The notes under the pieces were generated by a model. The model was given only the letters and a program-made list of their open reading frames with translations, was not told the DNA's origin and searched no databases. From IMG/VR virus record IMGVR_UViG_3300035661_000001, positions 372,001-436,000 of that record: a DNA stretch of 64,000 nucleotides. The stretch is one strand, 5' to 3'. This document shows, piece by piece, positions 4,424-42,359 of the stretch (position 1 is its first letter; each line of letters opens with the position of its first letter). The position numbers were made by a program, and so were the translations under genes.

Positions 4424-4499
4424 CAAATTAAATAGCTTTATCAATAATTAAGTATGTAACGTACGTTGTGTAGGTTTGCTGGGAAAATCGGAGATTATA

Positions 4500-5129
4500 A
4501 TGTTGCAAGAGAAAGAAGCTCAAGAATTAATTGTAAAATTTATTGAGCTCAGAGAAAAATCCAATGAATCCAAGATGCCAGCAGATATTGTTGAATTTAA
4601 AAAACATGAGAAGTTGTGTATTGAGAAATTTAAGTATTTAGTTACTATGAAAACTGGTAGATACAAATCATTTAGTAATTATGAAGATCTTAATCAAGAA
4701 GGTTTAGAAGCCTTAGTGAAGTCTATGAAAAACTACAATCCTAAAAAGGGGATTTTCTTTTACTGGGCACACAAGTATATTGATACTCGTATTTCACGAA
4801 GTGCTAATTTACACACAACGATTAGATATCCTTTAAGAGTAGCTAAGAACACTCCTCCTCATAAAGAAGCTATAATGCCTACTATGATTGAAGAGAGACA
4901 TTGCCCTGATAAAGAGTACGAAGAAGCTTTGACTGTTTCATCTATCGAATCAGCTATGGTTGCATTAACAAATGAACAAAAAGAAATTATTAGCCTAGCA
5001 TATGGAATCGATGGAGATAAGCCGATGTCAATTAATAAGATATGTAAAAAATTAAACATATCTAGAGTTAGTTGTTTGAAAACAATTAACAATTCATTGT
5101 TGTCGATGAAAAGTAATATTGCTGTATAA
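4500..5129 (+). CDS. Phage RNA polymerase sigma factor (sigma70 family)
   Basis: Region 2 EDLNQEGLEALVKSMKNYNPKKG.FFYWA; region 4 HTH LTNEQKEIISLAYG...SINKICKKLNISR. Confidence 0.85.
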   Translation: MLQEKEAQELIVKFIELREKSNESKMPADIVEFKKHEKLCIEKFKYLVTMKTGRYKSFSNYEDLNQEGLEALVKSMKNYNPKKGIFFYWAHKYIDTRISRSANLHTTIRYPLRVAKNTPPHKEAIMPTMIEERHCPDKEYEEALTVSSIESAMVALTNEQKEIISLAYGIDGDKPMSINKICKKLNISRVSCLKTINNSLLSMKSNIAV

Positions 5130-35193: not shown

Positions 35194-36282
35194 ATGAATA
35201 TCCCGCAAATAATCGCCTCAAGCGATGATAAACTTTCATCGCTTTTTAATATGATTCCTATTCATATTCATGAAAATAGGGTAAAAGAAATAGATCATCA
35301 GGTCAGTTCCCCGGAACTCTGGAGAAATCCACAAAAAGCCGCCGTTCTTATGAAAGAAAGACAAAAACTTTCAGAACTAATATCTTTCTTATCAACCGCC
35401 AAATCTAAATTGGAATTCTATAAAGAATGTTTATCTTCCATTCCAGATGAATTAATAGGAATAGAAGACCAAATAATGAGTTTATACTCCGCTATCTCCA
35501 ACTTGGAGTTTAAACAAATGTTATCCGATCCACTCGACGATTCTCCAGCAATAATTTCTATCAACGCTGGCGCTGGAGGATTAGAAGCCGCTAATTGGAC
35601 TACCATGCTTTTTAGAATGTATTCCAGATATGCCGCCGCTAATGACTTAAAAATAGAACTCCTTGACATGAAACCCTCAGAAGAACACTCTTCTATCTGT
35701 ACAGACTCCGTCTCTATTCGTATCGAAGGTCCCTATGCTTATGGCTTTCTTAAATCAGAAATAGGCGTTCATCGATTAATTCGTAACTCTCCATTTAACG
35801 CTAATGATGCCAGACATACCTCATTCGCCGCCGTGACTGTTCTCCCAGATATAGAAGATCAAATAGATATTCAAATAAATGAAAAGGATATCGAAATTAC
35901 TACAATGCGATCCTCTGGCGCTGGTGGACAAAATGTTAATAAAGTAGAGTCAGCTGTTAGATTAAAACATATTCCAACCGGTCTAGTTATCAATTCTAGA
36001 TCAGAACGAGACCAACATACCAATAGAAAAATTGCTCTCAAAATTTTAAAAGCTAAACTTTATGAATTAGAAGTGAATAAGAAAAATGCCGAAAAAGAGA
36101 AGTTCTTCAACTCTATGCAGGATAACTCCTTCGGACATCAAATAAGGTCATATATTCTATTCCCATCCCAAATGGTAAAAGATCATCGCTCCGAATATGA
36201 AACTAAATCTGCTACACAAGTTCTAGATGGCGATTTAACTCCATTTATTAACGCTTTTCTACATTCAAATGTTAACCGTTAA
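35194..36282 (+). CDS. prfB: Peptide chain release factor 2
   Basis: GAGG.EA..W..ML.RMY, SPF specificity tripeptide, [26 protein letters not shown]; no internal frameshift. Confidence 0.93.
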
Positions 36283-36838
36283 AGATTTCATTGGATACAA
36301 CAATCCATGCTTCTTCTGCAAAACACCAATAGATCTGAAGATTAGATCTACTAATGCATCAAATGATCGATCTATCTCTATCAAACCGGACCTATCATCG
36401 GAAATATTAGATCTTGCTTTAAAAGTTACCTATGTGGGCACTCTTAATTTAAAAATAAATCACACCCACAACAGATTTAATTCAAATAATTTTAAAGACT
36501 TGACAGCATATTTAAAAGATTATAAGCTCTCTATGAGCCTTCGCTGCAATAAATGTGGCACTACCATAAAAAGCAAAAATTTACAATTTGATCTAGTTAA
36601 CCAAATTATCAAACCACTAGAAATATCTAGCGAAGTTCTCAACGTTATAGGTAAAGGTACTTTTTATTCTTTAGTCTCCAATTTCCAAAAGAATATATCT
36701 ATCCTGTCCGCAACTCCTATGCAACTAGGTAAAAATAATTATACCACTATACTAGATCTCCCACTGCAACCACTATCAAAATTCGATAGTCCAGAACATT
36801 TCATAAAGAAAATGAAAACCCTTCTTCTATTTATATGA
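36269..36838 (+). CDS. CxxC paralog family member 3
   Basis: CFFCKTP; ends KMKTLLLFI. Confidence 0.6.
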
Positions 36839-37176
36839 TATACGAAAATTGCCCAATCTGTTCAAAAACATTATCAAAACAATCAGAAACTTTAAACCCA
36901 GGTTTAATAAGCTGCGAGTCATTCTGCGAAAAAGAAAAAGACCACTCCTTCTTCTCAAGATGGTTTAATGAAGAACCCAATCAAACGCAAATAATTAAAA
37001 TTGCTTTCAAAGGTGACTCCAAAATATTTTTGAAACTCAATTACCAATTACAAAAAAGTTTTATCTGGACAAAACCAAATGACGTACATCCCATTAAAGT
37101 ATCATTGTTTGAACCAGATTTCTCTGATATCCCAAAACTTAAAAAGAAACTCAAAACCCTTCTTCTATTCATATAA
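36835..37176 (+). CDS. CxxC paralog family member 4
   Basis: CPIC; ends PDFSDIPKLKKKLKTLLLFI. Confidence 0.65.
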   Translation: MIYENCPICSKTLSKQSETLNPGLISCESFCEKEKDHSFFSRWFNEEPNQTQIIKIAFKGDSKIFLKLNYQLQKSFIWTKPNDVHPIKVSLFEPDFSDIPKLKKKLKTLLLFI

Positions 37177-37178
37177 AT

Positions 37179-37532
37179 ATGAAAATCCCATCCGATTGCC
37201 CTATCTGTCATCAATTCCTGTTAAATAAATACATACAAGATGCCAACCAAATCGATGTCCTAAAGAAGAAATGCTTCCGCTCTCCCACCCATAATATAGA
37301 ATATACCTCCCTCCCAAATCAGGACGATTCCCTTAAATCTATCACTCTCACCACCTTCAATAAACTAGAAATCTCCCATTTCAAATGGGACTTCCAATTA
37401 AAAGAATTCACAATCCGTTTCCCCAAAGGAAACTTTACCCAAGAGATAAAACATCTCCCATTCTTTATTCCCAATTTATCTAATCTCCCAACCCTAATAT
37501 CAAAAATTAAGAAATACTTAATTTTCTCATGA
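37179..37532 (+). CDS. CxxC paralog family member 5
   Basis: CPIC; ends PNLSNLPTLISKIKKYLIFS. Confidence 0.65.
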   Translation: MKIPSDCPICHQFLLNKYIQDANQIDVLKKKCFRSPTHNIEYTSLPNQDDSLKSITLTTFNKLEISHFKWDFQLKEFTIRFPKGNFTQEIKHLPFFIPNLSNLPTLISKIKKYLIFS

Positions 37533-37545
37533 CATATGATAATGC

Positions 37546-37875
37546 ATGAAGCTACCCAAATTTTGCCCAATCTGTAATAATAGATTAAAAAAAGATGTCA
37601 ACCCACAAATAAACTCTAGCAAAATCTGCTGCGCTAAATCCCCAGGACACTATCTCGGATACCTATTTGACGAAAAATCTCAGCTCACTCACGTCTTCCT
37701 TACCCTAGACAATTACTCAAGCATCGAACTACGAACAATCCATAACGAAACAATCTTCTATTATAACCCCAAATCTAACCTGGATTTTCTCGTCATACCC
37801 AAACTCCTAATTCCCGATTTCCCATCCCTCAGTAAACTAAAACAAAAACTATCCATCCTAAGGGTGTTTATCTAA
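37546..37875 (+). CDS. CxxC paralog family member 6
   Basis: CPIC; ends PDFPSLSKLKQKLSILRVFI. Confidence 0.65.
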   Translation: MKLPKFCPICNNRLKKDVNPQINSSKICCAKSPGHYLGYLFDEKSQLTHVFLTLDNYSSIELRTIHNETIFYYNPKSNLDFLVIPKLLIPDFPSLSKLKQKLSILRVFI

Positions 37876-37898
37876 CCCACCCATCAAGAGGTCTACCC

Positions 37899-38264
37899 TT
37901 GAATTGCCCCTCCCTAAATTGCCCGTTCTGTAACAATCCACTGCAATTTAAACTCGATAATTATAAATTTGTAAGACAAAACTACTCCCAACCATATTCC
38001 TGTACAAAATGTCCAGGAAAACCTACCTTCGCCCTACTCTTCCAACAAGATAAAATCCCCCAAGCTATTGATATCTTCCTGCCCGCCAAATATAAAAAAC
38101 AACGCTATTATATTCACCAAAATTATATAGCCAAATCTACCACCATCTTAAAAAATAACTACCCCAAATCTATCATCATAACCTCTCTCCCTATCCTAGA
38201 TATCTCCCCTAATACATCCCAACATACCCTATATAGAATTCTAAGCAACAAAGCCTTCCTATGA
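37899..38264 (+). CDS. CxxC paralog family member 7
   Basis: CPFC..PL, CTKC; ends RILSNKAFL. Confidence 0.6.
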   Translation: MNCPSLNCPFCNNPLQFKLDNYKFVRQNYSQPYSCTKCPGKPTFALLFQQDKIPQAIDIFLPAKYKKQRYYIHQNYIAKSTTILKNNYPKSIIITSLPILDISPNTSQHTLYRILSNKAFL

Positions 38265-38615
38265 CTCCAAATTGCATTTTTTTTGCTCTTCTATCCTAGA
38301 AATTACCGAATTATCAAAAAACTCTTCCGTTGCACATTGCCCCCAATGTATGAAAATAGAAGAATATTATATTTCTTATTACCTAGAAACTAATAAAAAA
38401 ATTGACACATGCATGGTTTATCACTCAGACAAAAGTATAAAATACTCTGTCGCCCTAGACCTAAAACTATACACTATCATCATCACTACCTGGGAAGCAA
38501 ATGCCCTAGTCGATGCTATCTATTTCCCCTCCCACTATTCAATTCCCTATTCCACCTAATGGAAATCGCCGGACAATTTGCCCAGCGATTCAATAAAATT
38601 AAAGCTTTCCTTTAA
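38261..38615 (+). pseudogene. CxxC paralog family member 8, split by two frameshifts
   Basis: ATG 38261 MTPNCIF, a T8 run, then frame 38272 CSSILE..CPQC, then frame 38409 ending RFNKIKAFL. Confidence 0.5.
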
Positions 38616-39337
38616 TTCATTATTCCCTCACCTCTCAAAAACTCCTGGATCTTATCCACATGTACAAAAAATACATGCCCAGGGGCATCTCTCATCAGAA
38701 AACTACAAATCCCCACCAATCTGCCCTCCATATCAAATACCCCACCACCACTGTTCCCATGCCAGCCACTCACGTCAACCGCCAAAAACTTATCTCCATC
38801 TTCTATCATATCCTCCCTTATACCAGCTACCATACCCTCTAAATAATTATACAACATACCTCCAGTATGCCCCATAACTATCACCTTCTCCCCAACTCCT
38901 ACCCCATTTCCTATCTTAACCCCTTGCCCAACTCCCGATCCATCTATTGCTAACACTAACGCCAAATCAGTATCCTCAGATACCGCACTCACTATCCCCC
39001 ACCTAGCCGGACTTAAACTAATCCCCATCTTAGATATATTTACCTCACTCCTTATCTTAAATCTAATCAATGATCCAGCTTTAGCCTCATCTTCCTCATC
39101 CGTTACACAATGACGAGCCGTTATAAACCTGTCCTTGTCTATCCAAACTCCACCACAAATCATCCTCCATCCATCCTTGCTCTCTTTCACTATCAACAAT
39201 GTCTCCATCTGTAACTCAGGTATCTTATCCATCCCTCCTTCATGCTTGATTTTCACTTCCCCCCCACGGCAACAACTTACCAGCCCTATCACCATCAGAA
39301 CTAACACCATTATCCGAAACCATAATACGTTCCTCAT
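38612..39337 (-). CDS. Trypsin-like serine protease with signal/lipoprotein N-terminus
   Basis: TARHC, DLAL, GNSGG catalytic triad; hydrophobic N-terminus ending LVSCC. Confidence 0.88.
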   Translation of the reverse strand: MRNVLWFRIMVLVLMVIGLVSCCRGGEVKIKHEGGMDKIPELQMETLLIVKESKDGWRMICGGVWIDKDRFITARHCVTDEEDEAKAGSLIRFKIRSEVNISKMGISLSPARWGIVSAVSEDTDLALVLAIDGSGVGQGVKIGNGVGVGEKVIVMGHTGGMLYNYLEGMVAGIREDMIEDGDKFLAVDVSGWHGNSGGGVFDMEGRLVGICSFLMRDAPGHVFFVHVDKIQEFLRGEGIMN

Positions 39338-39590
39338 GATCTTATCCCGTTCTCTCCACCGCTCCCTATCAATTATATGTATTTATCAACTTATTAAAGT
39401 TTTAATTCAATTGCCCTATACATAATTTTAATAGATACTTTCAAAAATCCTTATTAGTAGTTTTTTTCATTTTGTTTGTTTTAATTCAAATTAACCGTTT
39501 TGAATTCGATATTTTCCATTTTAGGTCATATATTTGGTATTTTTTATTCTCTTTTAGTTACATTTAATTCTTCCTACCCCCTTTTGGGAG

Positions 39591-39605
39591 GCAAACCCCG
39601 TGCCA
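39591..39605 (-). promoter_or_regulatory. Lone sigma54 -24/-12 element at the composition boundary
   Basis: Reverse strand reads TTGGCACGGGGTTTGC (GG-N10-GC). Confidence 0.6.
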
Positions 39606-40095
39606 ACACCTGACCCATCCCAGCCTTTTCCCGCCACCCCCATTGCCCATCAGTTGTTCCATCCCATCCCAAACAAAGGTCATACAATAGATTTATTAAT
39701 CTATTCTTTCCGTTGACACTGTTTATTCTTTTCTTTTCCCATCCTATCAATGATTTTCTTTTCTATCTTCTTTTAGTACAGCCCATCCGTCAAACATCCC
39801 AAATCATACCATGATCACCATCCTCATCACGTTTTTCGGTGTTACCACCACGGAAACGGTGCCCGATCAGCCCATCCAGCGCCGTCGTGCTGCTGATCTG
39901 CTGATGAAGGTAGCTCTCGCGGACGGCAAAGGCGCCGGGCACCGCGACGGATGCGATCCCATCACGGTCGGTTGAGCTATCATGGCGCGACTCCTCGATA
40001 GGATGCTGGGTTACTGGAGCAAGCTGGATGACTGGAGCACTAAGGTAGAGACCTACCTGCTCTACACCCATCGCAAGTTCTGATCGGAGAAAGTC

Positions 40096-40449
<354 letters not shown>

Positions 40450-40711: not shown

Positions 40712-40720
40712 CCCGGTAGT

Positions 40721-40810
40721 GGCACGCCGATTGCAATATACACTTCCTGTGCCAATCAAGATAGCATCATAGGTTATGGCATTAGGTTTGCATTAAGCAA
40801 GTTGCTTGCC
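40721..40810. promoter_or_regulatory. Two head-to-head sigma54 -24/-12 pairs
   Basis: TGGCACGCCGATTGC..GTGCC (40721-40753) and TGGCATTAGGTTTGC..GCAAGTTGCTTGCC (40778-40810). Confidence 0.8.
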
Positions 40811-40869: not shown

Positions 40870-41151
40870 ATGAACACCCTGCAAAACATCCTCTCGACCC
40901 TCGCCGCTCTTCACACCGCGGATGCCGCAGTGACCGCGCTCCCCGTTGATGCTTCCGACGGTGAGGAAGATTCTCTCATGGCGGAATTCACCGCCGCAGA
41001 AACTGCGCTGTGGCACATGGCTCCGGCGTGGTTCAAAGATGCCGCGAGCGTCGGCGGGCTTCATGGCACGGGTCTTGCCGGCGATCCGGTCTTCTGGGCT
41101 CTAGATGACGTGGCGGAGCTTTGCGCCATATTGGCAATCGCCGCGCTCTAG
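40870..41151 (+). CDS. Acidic hypothetical protein (paralog of 41365)
   Basis: MNTLQNILSTLAAL...ALW. Confidence 0.65.
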   Translation: MNTLQNILSTLAALHTADAAVTALPVDASDGEEDSLMAEFTAAETALWHMAPAWFKDAASVGGLHGTGLAGDPVFWALDDVAELCAILAIAAL

Positions 41152-41628: not shown

Positions 41629-41660
41629 AAGGGTGGAGCCTCCGGGCTACCACCCTTTCG
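41629..41660 (+). terminator. Intrinsic terminator
   Basis: AAGGGTGGAGCC-TCCG-GGCTACCACCCTTT. Confidence 0.75.
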
Positions 41661-42311: not shown

Positions 42312-42359
42312 GGGGAGGGAGAGGATCGCCTCTCCCCTTCTCTTTTGCCGTTCTGTCAT

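Follow-up and report, generated by a model that had tools for sequence, protein, structure and literature searches.

What does an abrupt switch from AT-rich to GC-rich DNA signify within a large phage genome: a mis-assembly, an imported island, a genome end, or a functional boundary in the infection program? The original prediction, made from a 64,000-nt stretch of DNA (hereafter "the window," bases 372,001–436,000 of a 451,956-bp phage record), described about 30% GC core genes abutting about 60–65% GC small genes, with a T-rich non-coding tract, half of a sigma54 palindrome and a dense cluster of CCCATC hexamers at the junction. From these features it inferred a genome terminus, origin or entry point, and a phage that may keep a host-codon-adapted early module while the rest is AT-rich and relies on its own sigma and translation factors. 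We found that the observation holds at every position described and extends much further than was noticed, whereas the interpretation was only partly supported.

Structure of the junction

GC content per 1 kb is 27–40% over window 1–39 kb and 57–65% over 40–53 kb, with the jump (from ~30 to ~60%) at window ~39,580; in 200-bp steps, 39401–39600 is 27% GC with 96 T, and from 39801 onward GC is 58% or more. To the left, window 1–34377 is the right-hand end of a 177-kb core (genome 229,420–406,378) that has no CCCATC on either strand and that, in this part, encodes DnaB-like helicase, RNR, PhoH-PIN and GMP reductase. An RF2-like peptide chain release factor gene follows (35194–36282, + strand; Pfam PCRF 8.8e-46 and RF-1 2.2e-37; Atlas RF2 clusters), which is 58–71% identical in six other contigs and served as the anchor for finding relatives, though its nearest neighbors came from mixed phyla and were uninformative as to host phylum. 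Next is a "pre-junction" zone (36269–38877, + strand), a run of small paralogous CPxC-motif genes on a G-depleted coding strand (GC skew −0.5 to −0.6) with a few forward CCCATC. We considered whether the G-depleted stretch at 36.2–38.6 kb instead holds minus-strand genes in an alternative genetic code, but all three minus-strand frames are full of all three stop codons. Allowing for TAG recoding gave only a 5% gain in ORFs, so this is not a recoded genome.

The junction itself begins beyond a trypsin-like serine protease gene (38612–39337, minus strand; Pfam Trypsin_2 1.5e-15) that is transcribed away from it; a conserved relative of this gene occurs in G1/G2, and an ORF with the trypsin His motif reads off the minus strand in the same place in G2 (we denote the genome analyzed here G0, and its relatives from other samples G1, G2, G4, G5, and G6). 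The tract at 39338–39582 is an AT/T-rich non-coding spacer (27% GC) with short direct repeats (GTTTTAATTCAA twice). It is followed by a conserved junction element (39583–39606, minus strand), TTTGGGRGGCAA-N4-CGTGCC(AA). Here one correction is needed, as 39591–39605 is not merely the right half of a 33-bp element but a complete sigma54-type TGGCAC-N5-TTGC on the minus strand (39605 to 39591), about 250 nt upstream of the protease gene and embedded in a 22-nt element conserved in five phage lineages. Two extra matches to the junction pattern (L091 and L092) are unrelated chance hits without a GC jump. Neither sigma70-type promoters nor terminators at the junction exceeded shuffled sequence, and a search for known RNA families at 38.5–42.5 kb returned none.

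By sequence, the sigma54-type elements have GG at −24 and GC at −12 exactly one helical turn apart (TGGCAC-N5-TTGCW). There are 10 strict matches in G0, against about 0.1 expected by our estimate from base composition, and all lie within 15 kb to the right of the junction. The first rightward copy (40720–40734, + strand) is part of the 33-bp element TGGCAC-N5-TTGCA...GTGCCA; further rightward copies of the same 33-bp form start at 42359, 46123, 46164, and 54322, a sixth rightward core without that form is at 41064, and minus-strand copies are at 41629, 42972, and 48663. The same confinement, to the first few kb to ~34 kb on the right, is seen in five lineages. The phage has no Sigma54_DBD or Sigma54_activat hit, and thus no sigma54 or bEBP gene of its own was found, and the elements could instead be operators of the TGGCA...TGCCA palindrome type.

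Immediately to the right (39614–39787, + strand) is the densest CCCATC cluster of the whole 452-kb genome, with five copies in 175 bp (39614, 39646, 39663, 39738, and 39782) where the next best has three. The last copy has the gene-upstream form CCCATC-N4-AAAC and lies 29 nt before the ATG at 39811 of the first putative early ORF (39811–39975, + strand; 54 aa), which is conserved in G2 (53% identity). The GC-rich module (39607–64000, 55–65% GC) continues to genome 451,956 and then decays across the circular join; it holds small, mostly ORFan, + strand genes with orthologs in G1/G2, and CCCATC about every 110–150 bp.

A single genome with one sharp edge

Whether reads span the junction, and at what coverage on either side, had been proposed beforehand as the means to expose a chimera. 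Logan contigs of 7.8 kb from three independent metagenome runs span 37600–40220, and the depth of the GC-side contig relative to the junction-spanning, mostly AT-side contig is nearly constant (1.73, 1.49, 1.66, and 1.73) across four samples whose absolute depth varies 8-fold. The public contigs break not at the GC junction but at repeats, a 48-bp tandem duplication (40189–40284) and a (TCGGTC)n run (40406–40447). The same layout occurs in G1, G2, G5, and G6. The claim of one genome rather than a chimera is therefore supported, though the best evidence for it is not the scattered CCCATC on the AT side (34378, 34984, 36162, 37187, 37821, 37880, and 39025) on which it had rested.

What had been missed is that the GC-rich part has only one sharp edge. 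From the junction GC declines stepwise, from about 60 to 45 and then 32%, over ~130 kb (Spearman rho −0.93 between distance and GC in three genomes). GC-rich genes in G1 and G2 occur in the same order as their orthologs here but with lineage-specific GC3; for example, genome 414750–416081 has GC3 of 0.82, 0.69, and 0.91 in G0, G1, and G2, respectively.

A terminus, origin or entry point was not shown. GC skew gave no clear origin or terminus signature: cumulative skew rises almost monotonically in G1 and G2, only G0 shows a local dip (from −16 kb to about +15 kb), and only short AT-rich repeats are present. The TerL is of the GpA type, and the 254-bp "DTR" of the record is a tandem tRNA-Arg array.

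A polar hexamer

CCCATC occurs 360 times on the + strand and 7 times on the − strand. In the first 40 kb there are 224 copies versus 14 expected under a first-order Markov model (16-fold), for the next 230 kb enrichment is about 5-fold, and the hexamer is absent from the 177-kb core; GATGGG on the + strand is observed 7 times versus about 103 expected. The only reverse copy outside the GC zone sits on unavoidable Trp-Met-Gly codons of an SbcD-like gene in all three genomes. This genome-wide polarity and purging had not been noticed in the original prediction.

In the first 40 kb, spacing is quasi-regular (~100 bp), with 16 gaps under 75 bp versus 77 expected and 119 versus 46 for 75–150 bp; the distribution has the same shape in 527 gaps from three genomes, with no helical or codon phasing. 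A codon or dipeptide origin is ruled out because all three frames and intergenic DNA are used. Polarity follows the genome axis and not the gene strand, as minus-strand ORFs contain 20 forward sites versus 5.9 expected and 0 reverse sites versus 4.0 expected. An RNA-level role (RNase target or RNA-binding site) was rejected on these same grounds, since polarity and enrichment persist in minus-strand genes, whose mRNAs therefore carry GAUGGG freely. Individual sites are conserved in position, with 16 of 32 and 16 of 49 sites at the homologous nucleotide in G2, against chance expectations of 0.2 and 0.1. A primase-site reading (a DnaG-type primase is present) explains the polarity but not the purging.

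The sequence context of the hexamer differs among relatives. In the distant relatives it heads a longer (14–20 nt) intergenic element placed just upstream of ribosome-binding sites: G6 has CCCATCGCCmAACGG-N3-GAA among 24 CCCATC sites in the 24.5 kb after its junction, and G5 has CCCATCATGAAACA among 10 sites in 7 kb. In G0, G1, and G2 a subset reads CCCATC-N4-5-AAC with a start codon about 25–35 nt downstream, but such fixed, extended placement holds for only about 5% of copies in these genomes, and in G0 no extended motif surrounds the hexamer apart from A/T at −1. Gene starts are enriched downstream of sites by only 1.5–2× (up to 3×); about three quarters of the hexamers have no gene start within 60 nt downstream, and most are intragenic.

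Codon usage and the translation toolkit

Conserved genes near the junction (putatively early) have GC3 of 0.69 versus 0.20 in late ones, and AGA, TTA, ATA, and AAA rise from 4–20% to 31–83% of their families. All 41 phage tRNAs lie downstream of the junction, starting with those for Lys-AAA, Leu-UUG, Arg-AGA, and Ile-AUA, and the multi-copy tRNAs read exactly the codons that the GC-rich genes avoid. Genes for aaRS are present along with the RF2-like gene. Composition thus supports the predicted codon-adapted early module, with the rest relying on the phage's own translation factors, though "host-adapted" remains inference. The predicted reliance on its own sigma rests on one sub-threshold Sigma70_r2 hit, to an ORF (window 4476–5129) in the hexamer-free core. 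A search with PF00562 returned no phage RNA polymerase, one with PF00940 was uninformative, and sequence comparison of the giant ORFs with PDB gave no hits to a virion RNA polymerase.

The head of a putative early region

We propose, tentatively, that the junction is the upstream boundary ("head") of the early region of a ~450-kb tailed phage whose genes almost all run rightward from this point around the circular map. The analysis itself establishes that this is a single genome with one sharp edge followed by stepwise decay; that the layout is conserved and GC3 lineage-specific, so that composition is maintained in place rather than imported; that the junction carries a conserved, leftward-facing sigma54-type element and that such elements are confined to its right-hand vicinity; that codon usage and tRNA placement differ as described; and that CCCATC is a DNA-level, genome-axis-polar, position-conserved signal, dense and then sparser away from the junction, purged from the replication/structural core and nearly so in the opposite orientation everywhere. 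The remainder we infer from sequence alone: genes would be arranged by time of expression (and possibly of entry); those expressed before the phage's own tRNAs, aaRS, and RF2 are available would be kept in a GC-rich composition, presumed to match the host's, and started from host sigma54-type promoters; and CCCATC would be the core of a phage-specific, rightward-only transcription signal, a minimal single-element promoter or polymerase-loading site defining the early/middle regulon. In this view, misplaced copies (leftward anywhere, or inside the late/core regulon) would be selected against, and in this subclade the signal would have been amplified to near the packing limit of a polymerase footprint.

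Several results sit uneasily with this model. GC1 and GC2 shift as well as GC3, so translational selection alone is insufficient and a DNA-level pressure (mutation bias, biased conversion, or silencer evasion) must contribute. Most hexamers lack a nearby gene start, there is no flanking conservation, one site per 110–150 bp is far denser than any known promoter set, and the searches above recovered no cognate polymerase. Replication genes sit in the hexamer-free "late" zone, which does not fit a simple early-to-late linear order, and the phage encodes an FtsK-type motor, which offers a different reader for a polar motif.

A still more speculative reading, which we consider unlikely but not excluded, is of a "time-ordered" genome that enters or is read from one fixed head, with composition, codon usage and tRNA gene order graded along it, in which a near-maximally packed, co-directional array of minimal loading sites (for RNA polymerase or the FtsK-type motor) on the leading ~40 kb acts as a ratchet or puller, or as a one-way marker, for handling a 450-kb molecule. 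If true, this would be a new class of genome-wide polar cis-signal in viruses, maintained by purging every misplaced copy.

Huge phages are known almost only from metagenomes, and these patterns offer a sequence-readable map of an infection program: a sharp start point, a two-fold GC range that tracks position, a translation toolkit placed where its products would be needed, and a polar signal whose statistics (e.g., half of the mapped early-zone sites held at the same nucleotide in a relative with ~50% protein identity) show strong selection. They yield testable predictions for how very large genomes are delivered, timed and handled, and flag the FtsK-type motor as a candidate player. They also carry a practical warning, as composition-based tools will split or mislabel such genomes; three relatives are labeled "provirus" in IMG/VR, and we suspect this may be because the GC-rich head looks like host DNA. 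Our literature searches for the motif, for GC gradients in huge phages and for GC-rich early regions found no prior description.

Alternative explanations

The rival that survives best, though doubtful, is a KOPS/SRS-like guide, in which CCCATC (GATGGG on the other strand) would load or steer a phage-encoded FtsK-type dsDNA translocase along the genome axis, toward or away from the junction, for concatemer processing, genome reeling or clearing. The phage does encode an FtsK alpha-beta motor homolog (genome 221,367–222,371; PF01580 6.8e-30; PDB FtsK 2IUS 1.7e-42, aligned over residues 13–325), which is conserved in G1, G2, and G4 and whose gene lies within 0–8 kb of the last forward site in all three genomes. 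Polarity irrespective of gene strand, purging of the reverse orientation, and density rising toward one point (as KOPS density rises toward dif) are consistent with such a guide, and GATGGG resembles the 3′ parts of KOPS GGGNAGGG and SRS GAGAAGGG. However, the protein ends after the beta domain with no FtsK_gamma (KOPS-reading) hit, and the neighboring 337-aa ORF has no Pfam hit. Both motor and polar motif are present in G0, G1, G2, and G4, while G5 has the motor without a genome-wide polar hexamer, in a comparison where the other relatives are 42–48% fragments. Polarity does not converge on the junction from both sides, as the seven sites just left of it have the same orientation, and neither the purging of forward copies from the core nor the gene-upstream extended elements in G5 and G6 are expected for a translocase guide.

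It is also possible, though unlikely as the whole account, that the GC gradient is driven by DNA-level pressure rather than translation, either through evasion of AT-targeting xenogeneic silencers (H-NS, MvaT, or Lsr2 type) until phage counter-measures are made or through GC-biased conversion in a recombination-prone leading region. GC1 and GC2 rise with GC3 (0.60/0.45/0.69 versus 0.43/0.36/0.20), and GC tracks hexamer density (rho 0.81–0.91). Yet intergenic and promoter stretches inside the GC zone stay AT/T-rich and the codon shifts match the phage tRNA set closely. This reading is not exclusive of our main explanation.

Less likely still, GATGGG could be the Chi sequence of the host's RecBCD/AddAB enzyme, with a co-oriented array at the first-exposed DNA end switching off degradation of entering or rolling-circle DNA. 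The orientation is, by inference from the E. coli rule, the one read by an enzyme entering at the junction end and moving right; the first copy lies 9 nt from the junction element and density decays with distance; and phages without RecBCD inhibitors over-represent Chi while those with inhibitors avoid it (PMC3784561). But a wrongly oriented Chi is inert, so near-total purging of the reverse orientation and of forward copies from the core is not predicted, and the minimum spacing and the RBS-adjacent extended elements in G5 and G6 are unexplained.

Restriction evasion alone, in which the hexamer would be the asymmetric site of a host Type III or Type ISP enzyme that cuts only between inversely oriented sites and the phage would therefore have fixed one orientation, is very unlikely: the strand asymmetry is extreme, restriction-site avoidance in these genomes is very strong in general (GGCC is observed 21 times versus 632 expected) and no N6/N4 methyltransferase gene was found, but this explains neither the 5–16-fold enrichment, spacing, site conservation and gradient nor the purging of the tolerated orientation from the core. 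That the GC-rich part is foreign, by mis-assembly or recent acquisition of a host or other-phage island, is suggested by the abrupt edge, the 1.5–1.7× higher GC-side depth and the "provirus" labels, but is effectively refuted by the bridging contigs and constant depth ratio, the gradual far side, the syntenic orthologs of differing GC3, the junction element conserved in five lineages, and the continuation of the polar hexamer 230 kb into AT-rich DNA.

Comparison with known systems

Chi sites in phage genomes (PMC3784561) show that both over-representation and avoidance of a short polar G-rich motif occur in phages, though observed/expected ratios are about 2.5 there and 5–16 here, where there is also near-total purging of one orientation, a minimum spacing, and promoter-like extended forms in relatives. 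The EcoP15I sites of T7 are likewise copies of an asymmetric hexamer all in one orientation (evading Type III restriction), while the sites here are also strongly enriched, spaced, position-conserved and regionally excluded. FtsK-KOPS and SpoIIIE-SRS motifs share G-richness on one strand, polarity along the replicon axis whatever the gene strand, higher density toward one locus and a cognate-type motor gene, but the motif here is 6–7 rather than 8 nt, lies on one arm only without polarity inversion, is absent from 40% of the genome, and accompanies a motor lacking a gamma domain.

Single-element phage promoters and activator boxes (the T4 late promoter TATAAATA, one short −10-type element used with gp55, and the T4 MotA box) are the analogs of our main explanation, being short, orientation-specific, defining of a temporal regulon and necessarily kept out of other regions; the element here is GC-rich and mostly intragenic, at far higher density, and its promoter role is inferred. 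Differences between early and late codon usage, with phage tRNAs compensating for codons rare in the host and reading those over-used in late genes, have been described (e.g., PMC5683454; literature on cyanophage and T4-like tRNAs), but here the magnitude is larger (GC3 0.69–0.9 versus 0.20 inside one genome), the dependence on position is monotonic, and the upstream edge is sharp. Finally, T7- and T5-type polar genomes place early genes at the leading end, with transcription-driven genome entry in T7 and a first-step-transfer region of about 8% in T5. As there, nearly all genes here run in one direction from a defined head, with a block of small host-takeover-type ORFans at that head (about 9% of the genome) to which host-type promoters, as judged by sequence, are confined; the present genome is ten times larger, its physical ends and entry order would be by analogy only, and it adds a 30-point GC difference with graded decay and a hexamer array, neither of which is known in T7 or T5.

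A huge phage genome from microbial mats and sediments

The region examined here (bases 372,001–436,000) belongs to a 451,956-bp IMG/VR virus record rated 100% complete. The 254-bp “direct terminal repeat” of this record (genome 1–254 and 451,703–451,956) is two units of a 127-bp tandem array, with at least 4 copies, that carries tRNA-Arg(UCU) genes at both contig ends, and a near-identical 349-kb contig from another sample appears to end close to this array. The repeat is probably an assembler break point rather than a virion end, and the record is therefore best read as a circular or permuted assembly, not as evidence of physical ends. Nearly all long ORFs are on the + strand. The genome (hereafter G0) encodes a GpA-type large terminase, tail sheath and baseplate proteins, DnaE, DnaB-like and other helicases, a DnaG-type primase, SbcCD, NAD-ligase, topoisomerase IA and RNR, as well as several aminoacyl-tRNA synthetases, an RF2-like release factor and 41 tRNAs. 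A PhuZ-like tubulin (genome 364,665–366,020) is supported only by a weak hit (phrog_4733, 1.3e-7), in a phage with no detectable multisubunit RNA polymerase. G0 is a huge tailed phage from microbial-mat and sediment metagenomes.

An abrupt compositional junction in a single genome

The original prediction described an abrupt AT-to-GC switch preceded by a T-rich non-coding tract and marked by half of a sigma54-type palindrome and the densest CCCATC cluster, and this observation held: every listed element was present where it had been placed, including each CCCATC copy. GC is 27–40% per kb up to window position 39 kb and 57–65% from 40 kb, with the switch happening within about 200 bp of position 39,600. 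The tract at 39338–39582 is a T-rich non-coding spacer between a minus-strand trypsin-like protease gene (38612–39337) and the junction element, and the five CCCATC copies in 39614–39787 are the densest cluster in the whole genome. One correction is needed, in that 39591–39605 is a complete sigma54-type TGGCAC-N5-TTGC on the minus strand rather than a half element.

The junction is not an assembly chimera. Logan contigs of 7.8 kb from three independent runs cover 37600–40220 without a mismatch, breaking only at a 48-bp tandem duplication and a hexanucleotide run 0.6–0.8 kb further right. The latter, a (TCGGTC)n run at 40406–40447, attracts very high word depth (300–1000) and many loose contig ends in all runs, and this repeat is therefore shared with other DNA in these communities. 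In four runs whose absolute depth ranges from 4.8 to 39.6, the 21.6-kb contig on the GC side is 1.73, 1.49, 1.66 and 1.73 times deeper than the junction-spanning, mostly AT-side contig; a constant ratio argues for one molecule, though the excess itself may reflect either GC bias or terminal redundancy. More decisively, the RF2-like gene 3.3 kb left of the junction (window 35194–36282) retrieved six other viral contigs, and two complete relatives with 69–71% RF identity—G1 (432,844 bp) and G2 (446,541 bp)—show the same jump a few kb downstream of RF. IMG/VR classes G1, G2 and a further relative, G4, as “provirus” despite their being near-complete phage contigs, probably because, we infer, the GC-rich ORFan head resembles flanking host DNA to composition- or gene-content-based trimming.

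A graded decay of GC content, with codon usage and tRNA genes along the genome

The GC-rich part has one sharp edge only. Rightward from the junction, GC per 5 kb runs 60, 61, 59, 56, 57, 49, 48, 46 and 47%, then 42–46%, and eventually 39, 38, 37, 35 and 32%, continuing across the contig join, and distance versus GC gives a Spearman rho of -0.93 in G0, G1 and G2 alike. The profile looks like plateaus near 60, 45 and 32% in G0, near 60, 50, 38 and 33% in G2, and near 50, 45, 38 and 31% in G1. The GC-rich DNA is genuine + strand coding sequence: many small ORFs have orthologues in G1 and G2 at 30–65% identity, and GC3 differs by lineage (G1 < G0 < G2), e.g., 0.82, 0.69 and 0.91 in G0, G1 and G2, respectively, at genome 414750–416081. 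The composition is therefore maintained in place and tuned per lineage, and is not a recent import. Nine of ten conserved early proteins tested have no Pfam family, as is typical of phage early genes.

In conserved genes, GC1/GC2/GC3 are 0.60/0.45/0.69 in the first 40 kb, 0.52/0.39/0.40 in the next 100 kb, 0.43/0.33/0.23 in a further 130 kb and 0.43/0.36/0.20 in the core. AGA rises from 6 to 62% of Arg codons, TTA from 4 to 55% of Leu, ATA from 4 to 31% of Ile, and AAA from 20 to 83% of Lys. The multi-copy phage tRNAs are Arg-UCU (5), Lys-UUU (3), Ile-UAU (3), Leu-CAA (3), Phe-GAA (3) and Leu-UAA (2), of which the Arg, Lys, Ile and Leu-UAA species read exactly these four codons. In all three genomes every tRNA gene lies 5–255 kb downstream of the junction and none lies in the core, and the first ones encountered are mostly Lys, Leu, Arg and Ile tRNAs that read A/T-rich codons. 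These patterns support the idea that the head of the genome is written for an unmodified, GC-rich translation system, presumed to be that of the as yet unidentified host, and the rest for a phage-supplemented one. However, GC1 and GC2 also shift, so a DNA-level pressure must act as well.

Stop-codon usage also varies along the genome. The phage has an amber-suppressor-type tRNA (anticodon CUA; genome 80,119–80,195) alongside its RF2-like gene, and TAG ends 7 of 36 early ORFs and 14 of 108 next-zone ORFs, but only 3 of 141 and 2 of 140 ORFs in the later zones. Because reading TAG as sense adds only ~5% ORF cover, this looks like TAG-stop avoidance rather than full recoding.

A conserved sigma54-type element at the junction

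G0, G1 and G2 share, exactly at the edge, ACCCC-n-TTTGGGRGGCAA-N4-CGTGCC, followed 7–9 nt later by the first CCCATC. A search of IMG/VR with that pattern found it in two further lineages, G5 (353,765 bp) and G6 (178,722 bp), where it again sits at an AT-to-GC step and is followed within 35–60 bp by a rightward TGGCAY-N5-TTGCW. Read on the minus strand, the element is a near-consensus sigma54 -24/-12 promoter that points at the protease gene, and sigma54-type elements occur almost only in the first few kb after the junction (up to 34 kb in G0) in all five lineages. The phage has no sigma54 or enhancer-binding-protein gene. These elements would therefore be host-dependent immediate-early signals or, alternatively, operators of a TGGCA…TGCCA palindrome.

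A polar, position-conserved hexamer

CCCATC is by far the most strand-asymmetric hexamer in G0 (360:7), G1 (246:4) and G2 (352:4). Against Markov expectations, forward copies in G0 number 224 versus 14 expected in the first 40 kb, 83 versus 14 and 46 versus 11 in the next 230 kb, and 0 versus 8–12 in a 177-kb stretch that holds the replication and structural genes, with equivalent voids of 156 and 164 kb in G1 and G2. The reverse orientation is 7 observed versus about 103 expected genome-wide. The single reverse copy outside the GC zone (GATGGG on the + strand; genome 235,395 in G0, 83,836 in G1 and 152,419 in G2rc) lies, in all three genomes, on Trp-Met-Gly codons (TGG ATG GGN) within the Val-Trp-Met-Gly-His motif of an SbcD/Mre11-like phosphoesterase, where it cannot be avoided—a clean illustration of purging down to the unavoidable copy.

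The only flanking preference is A/T at -1, and sites fall in all three reading frames and in intergenic DNA. Spacing in the dense zone is not random: in G0, 16 gaps are under 75 bp against 77 expected and 119 gaps are 75–150 bp against 46 expected, and the same shape, with a mode at 80–120 bp and no helical or codon phase, is seen in 527 gaps from three genomes. Polarity and enrichment persist inside minus-strand genes (20 forward sites versus 5.9 expected and 0 reverse versus 4.0 expected, over 35.8 kb), and the signal is therefore read on DNA relative to the genome axis, not on mRNA. Individual sites are also conserved. Specifically, of the G0 sites that can be mapped through protein alignments, 16 of 32 (early) and 16 of 49 (middle) lie at exactly the homologous nucleotide in G2, and 3 of 19 and 5 of 45 do so in G1; chance expectation is 0.2 or less.

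A separate compositional signal points to restriction-site avoidance. GGCC is almost absent from G0 and its relatives G1, G2, G3, G5 and G6 (21 observed versus 632 expected in G0, 14 versus 353 in G1, 16 versus 797 in G2, 3 versus 234 in G3, and 0 in 40 kb of G6), even in the 60% GC zone, while CTCGAG is 2 versus 51 in G0 and CTGCAG is 1 versus 59 in G2. This is a strong signature of such avoidance and suggests that the DNA is unmodified.

Candidate roles for the hexamer

The more distant relatives are informative here. G5 and G6 lack the genome-wide purge, yet just after their junctions the hexamer heads a longer intergenic element placed immediately upstream of ribosome-binding sites: G6 has CCCATCGCCmAACGG-N3-GAA (22 copies of its CCCATCG core) among 24 CCCATC sites in the 24.5 kb after its junction, and G5 has CCCATCATGAAACA among 10 sites in 7 kb. 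G5 also has its own strongly one-stranded octamers (GTTAGAGA, 24:0; TGTTAGAC, 29:1; counted on the whole G5rc contig) and may use a different polar or promoter element. In G0, G1 and G2, a minority of sites have the same form, i.e., CCCATC-N4-5-AAC with a start codon about 25–35 nt downstream, including the copy at window 39782 before the first early ORF, and gene starts are 1.5–2-fold enriched downstream of sites.

We therefore favor, tentatively, a phage-specific, rightward transcription signal with a minimal core. This reading would account for the purging of leftward copies (which would cause antisense or head-on initiation), the purging from a differently timed regulon, the graded density by temporal class and a minimum spacing of about one polymerase footprint. 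However, it does not readily explain why most copies are intragenic and so dense, and searches of the phage for a cognate polymerase or sigma factor found none. While the single-genome architecture, its conservation among relatives and the hexamer's polarity, spacing and site conservation rest directly on the sequences analyzed, the transcriptional role of the hexamer, the host dependence of the sigma54-type elements and the match of the early module to the host are inferred.

A serious rival, though one we consider less likely, is that the hexamer guides a DNA translocase. The phage encodes an FtsK/SpoIIIE alpha-beta motor homologue without N-terminal membrane or gamma domains (genome 221,367–222,371, + strand) next to a 337-aa ORF with no known domain (222,352–223,365); the motor is conserved in G1, G2, G4 and G5, its gene lies at the far end of the hexamer zone, and the G-rich strand GATGGG recalls KOPS and SRS. 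Against this rival, the protein has no gamma domain, polarity does not invert at the junction, G5 carries the motor without the polar hexamer, and the extended forms next to ribosome-binding sites are not expected for a translocase guide. Chi-like and Type III-evasion readings each explain only part of the pattern.

Terminus, origin and entry point

Cumulative GC skew rises almost monotonically and so offers no origin/terminus signature. Only G0 has a local negative-skew zone around the junction, and part of it is due to oddly G-depleted genes at window 36269–38877, which encode a family of small paralogous proteins with CPxC…C motifs and a conserved C-terminal K-L-K-x-K-L…F-I tail. Their coding strand has only 5–12% G, so the proteins are poor in Gly, Ala, Val, Asp and Glu, and the G depletion is seen in G0, G2 and a further relative, G3, but not in G1. 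The GpA-type terminase, the conserved, partly dyad-symmetric junction element and the 1.5–1.7x depth on its right side would all be compatible with a cos/pac site, though this is a lead only.

Relation to known systems

The confirmed observation thus extends to a conserved, clade-level genome architecture, while the original interpretation is supported in part: a single genome and an early module in a different codon dialect are supported, whereas a terminus, origin or entry point remains undecided. We found no prior description of this architecture in the literature, and there is a substantial chance that it represents something more novel than its known analogues, each of which covers only parts of it. 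These are early/late codon bias with phage tRNAs (PMC5683454), Chi in phages (PMC3784561), KOPS, single-element promoters and the site orientation of T7.
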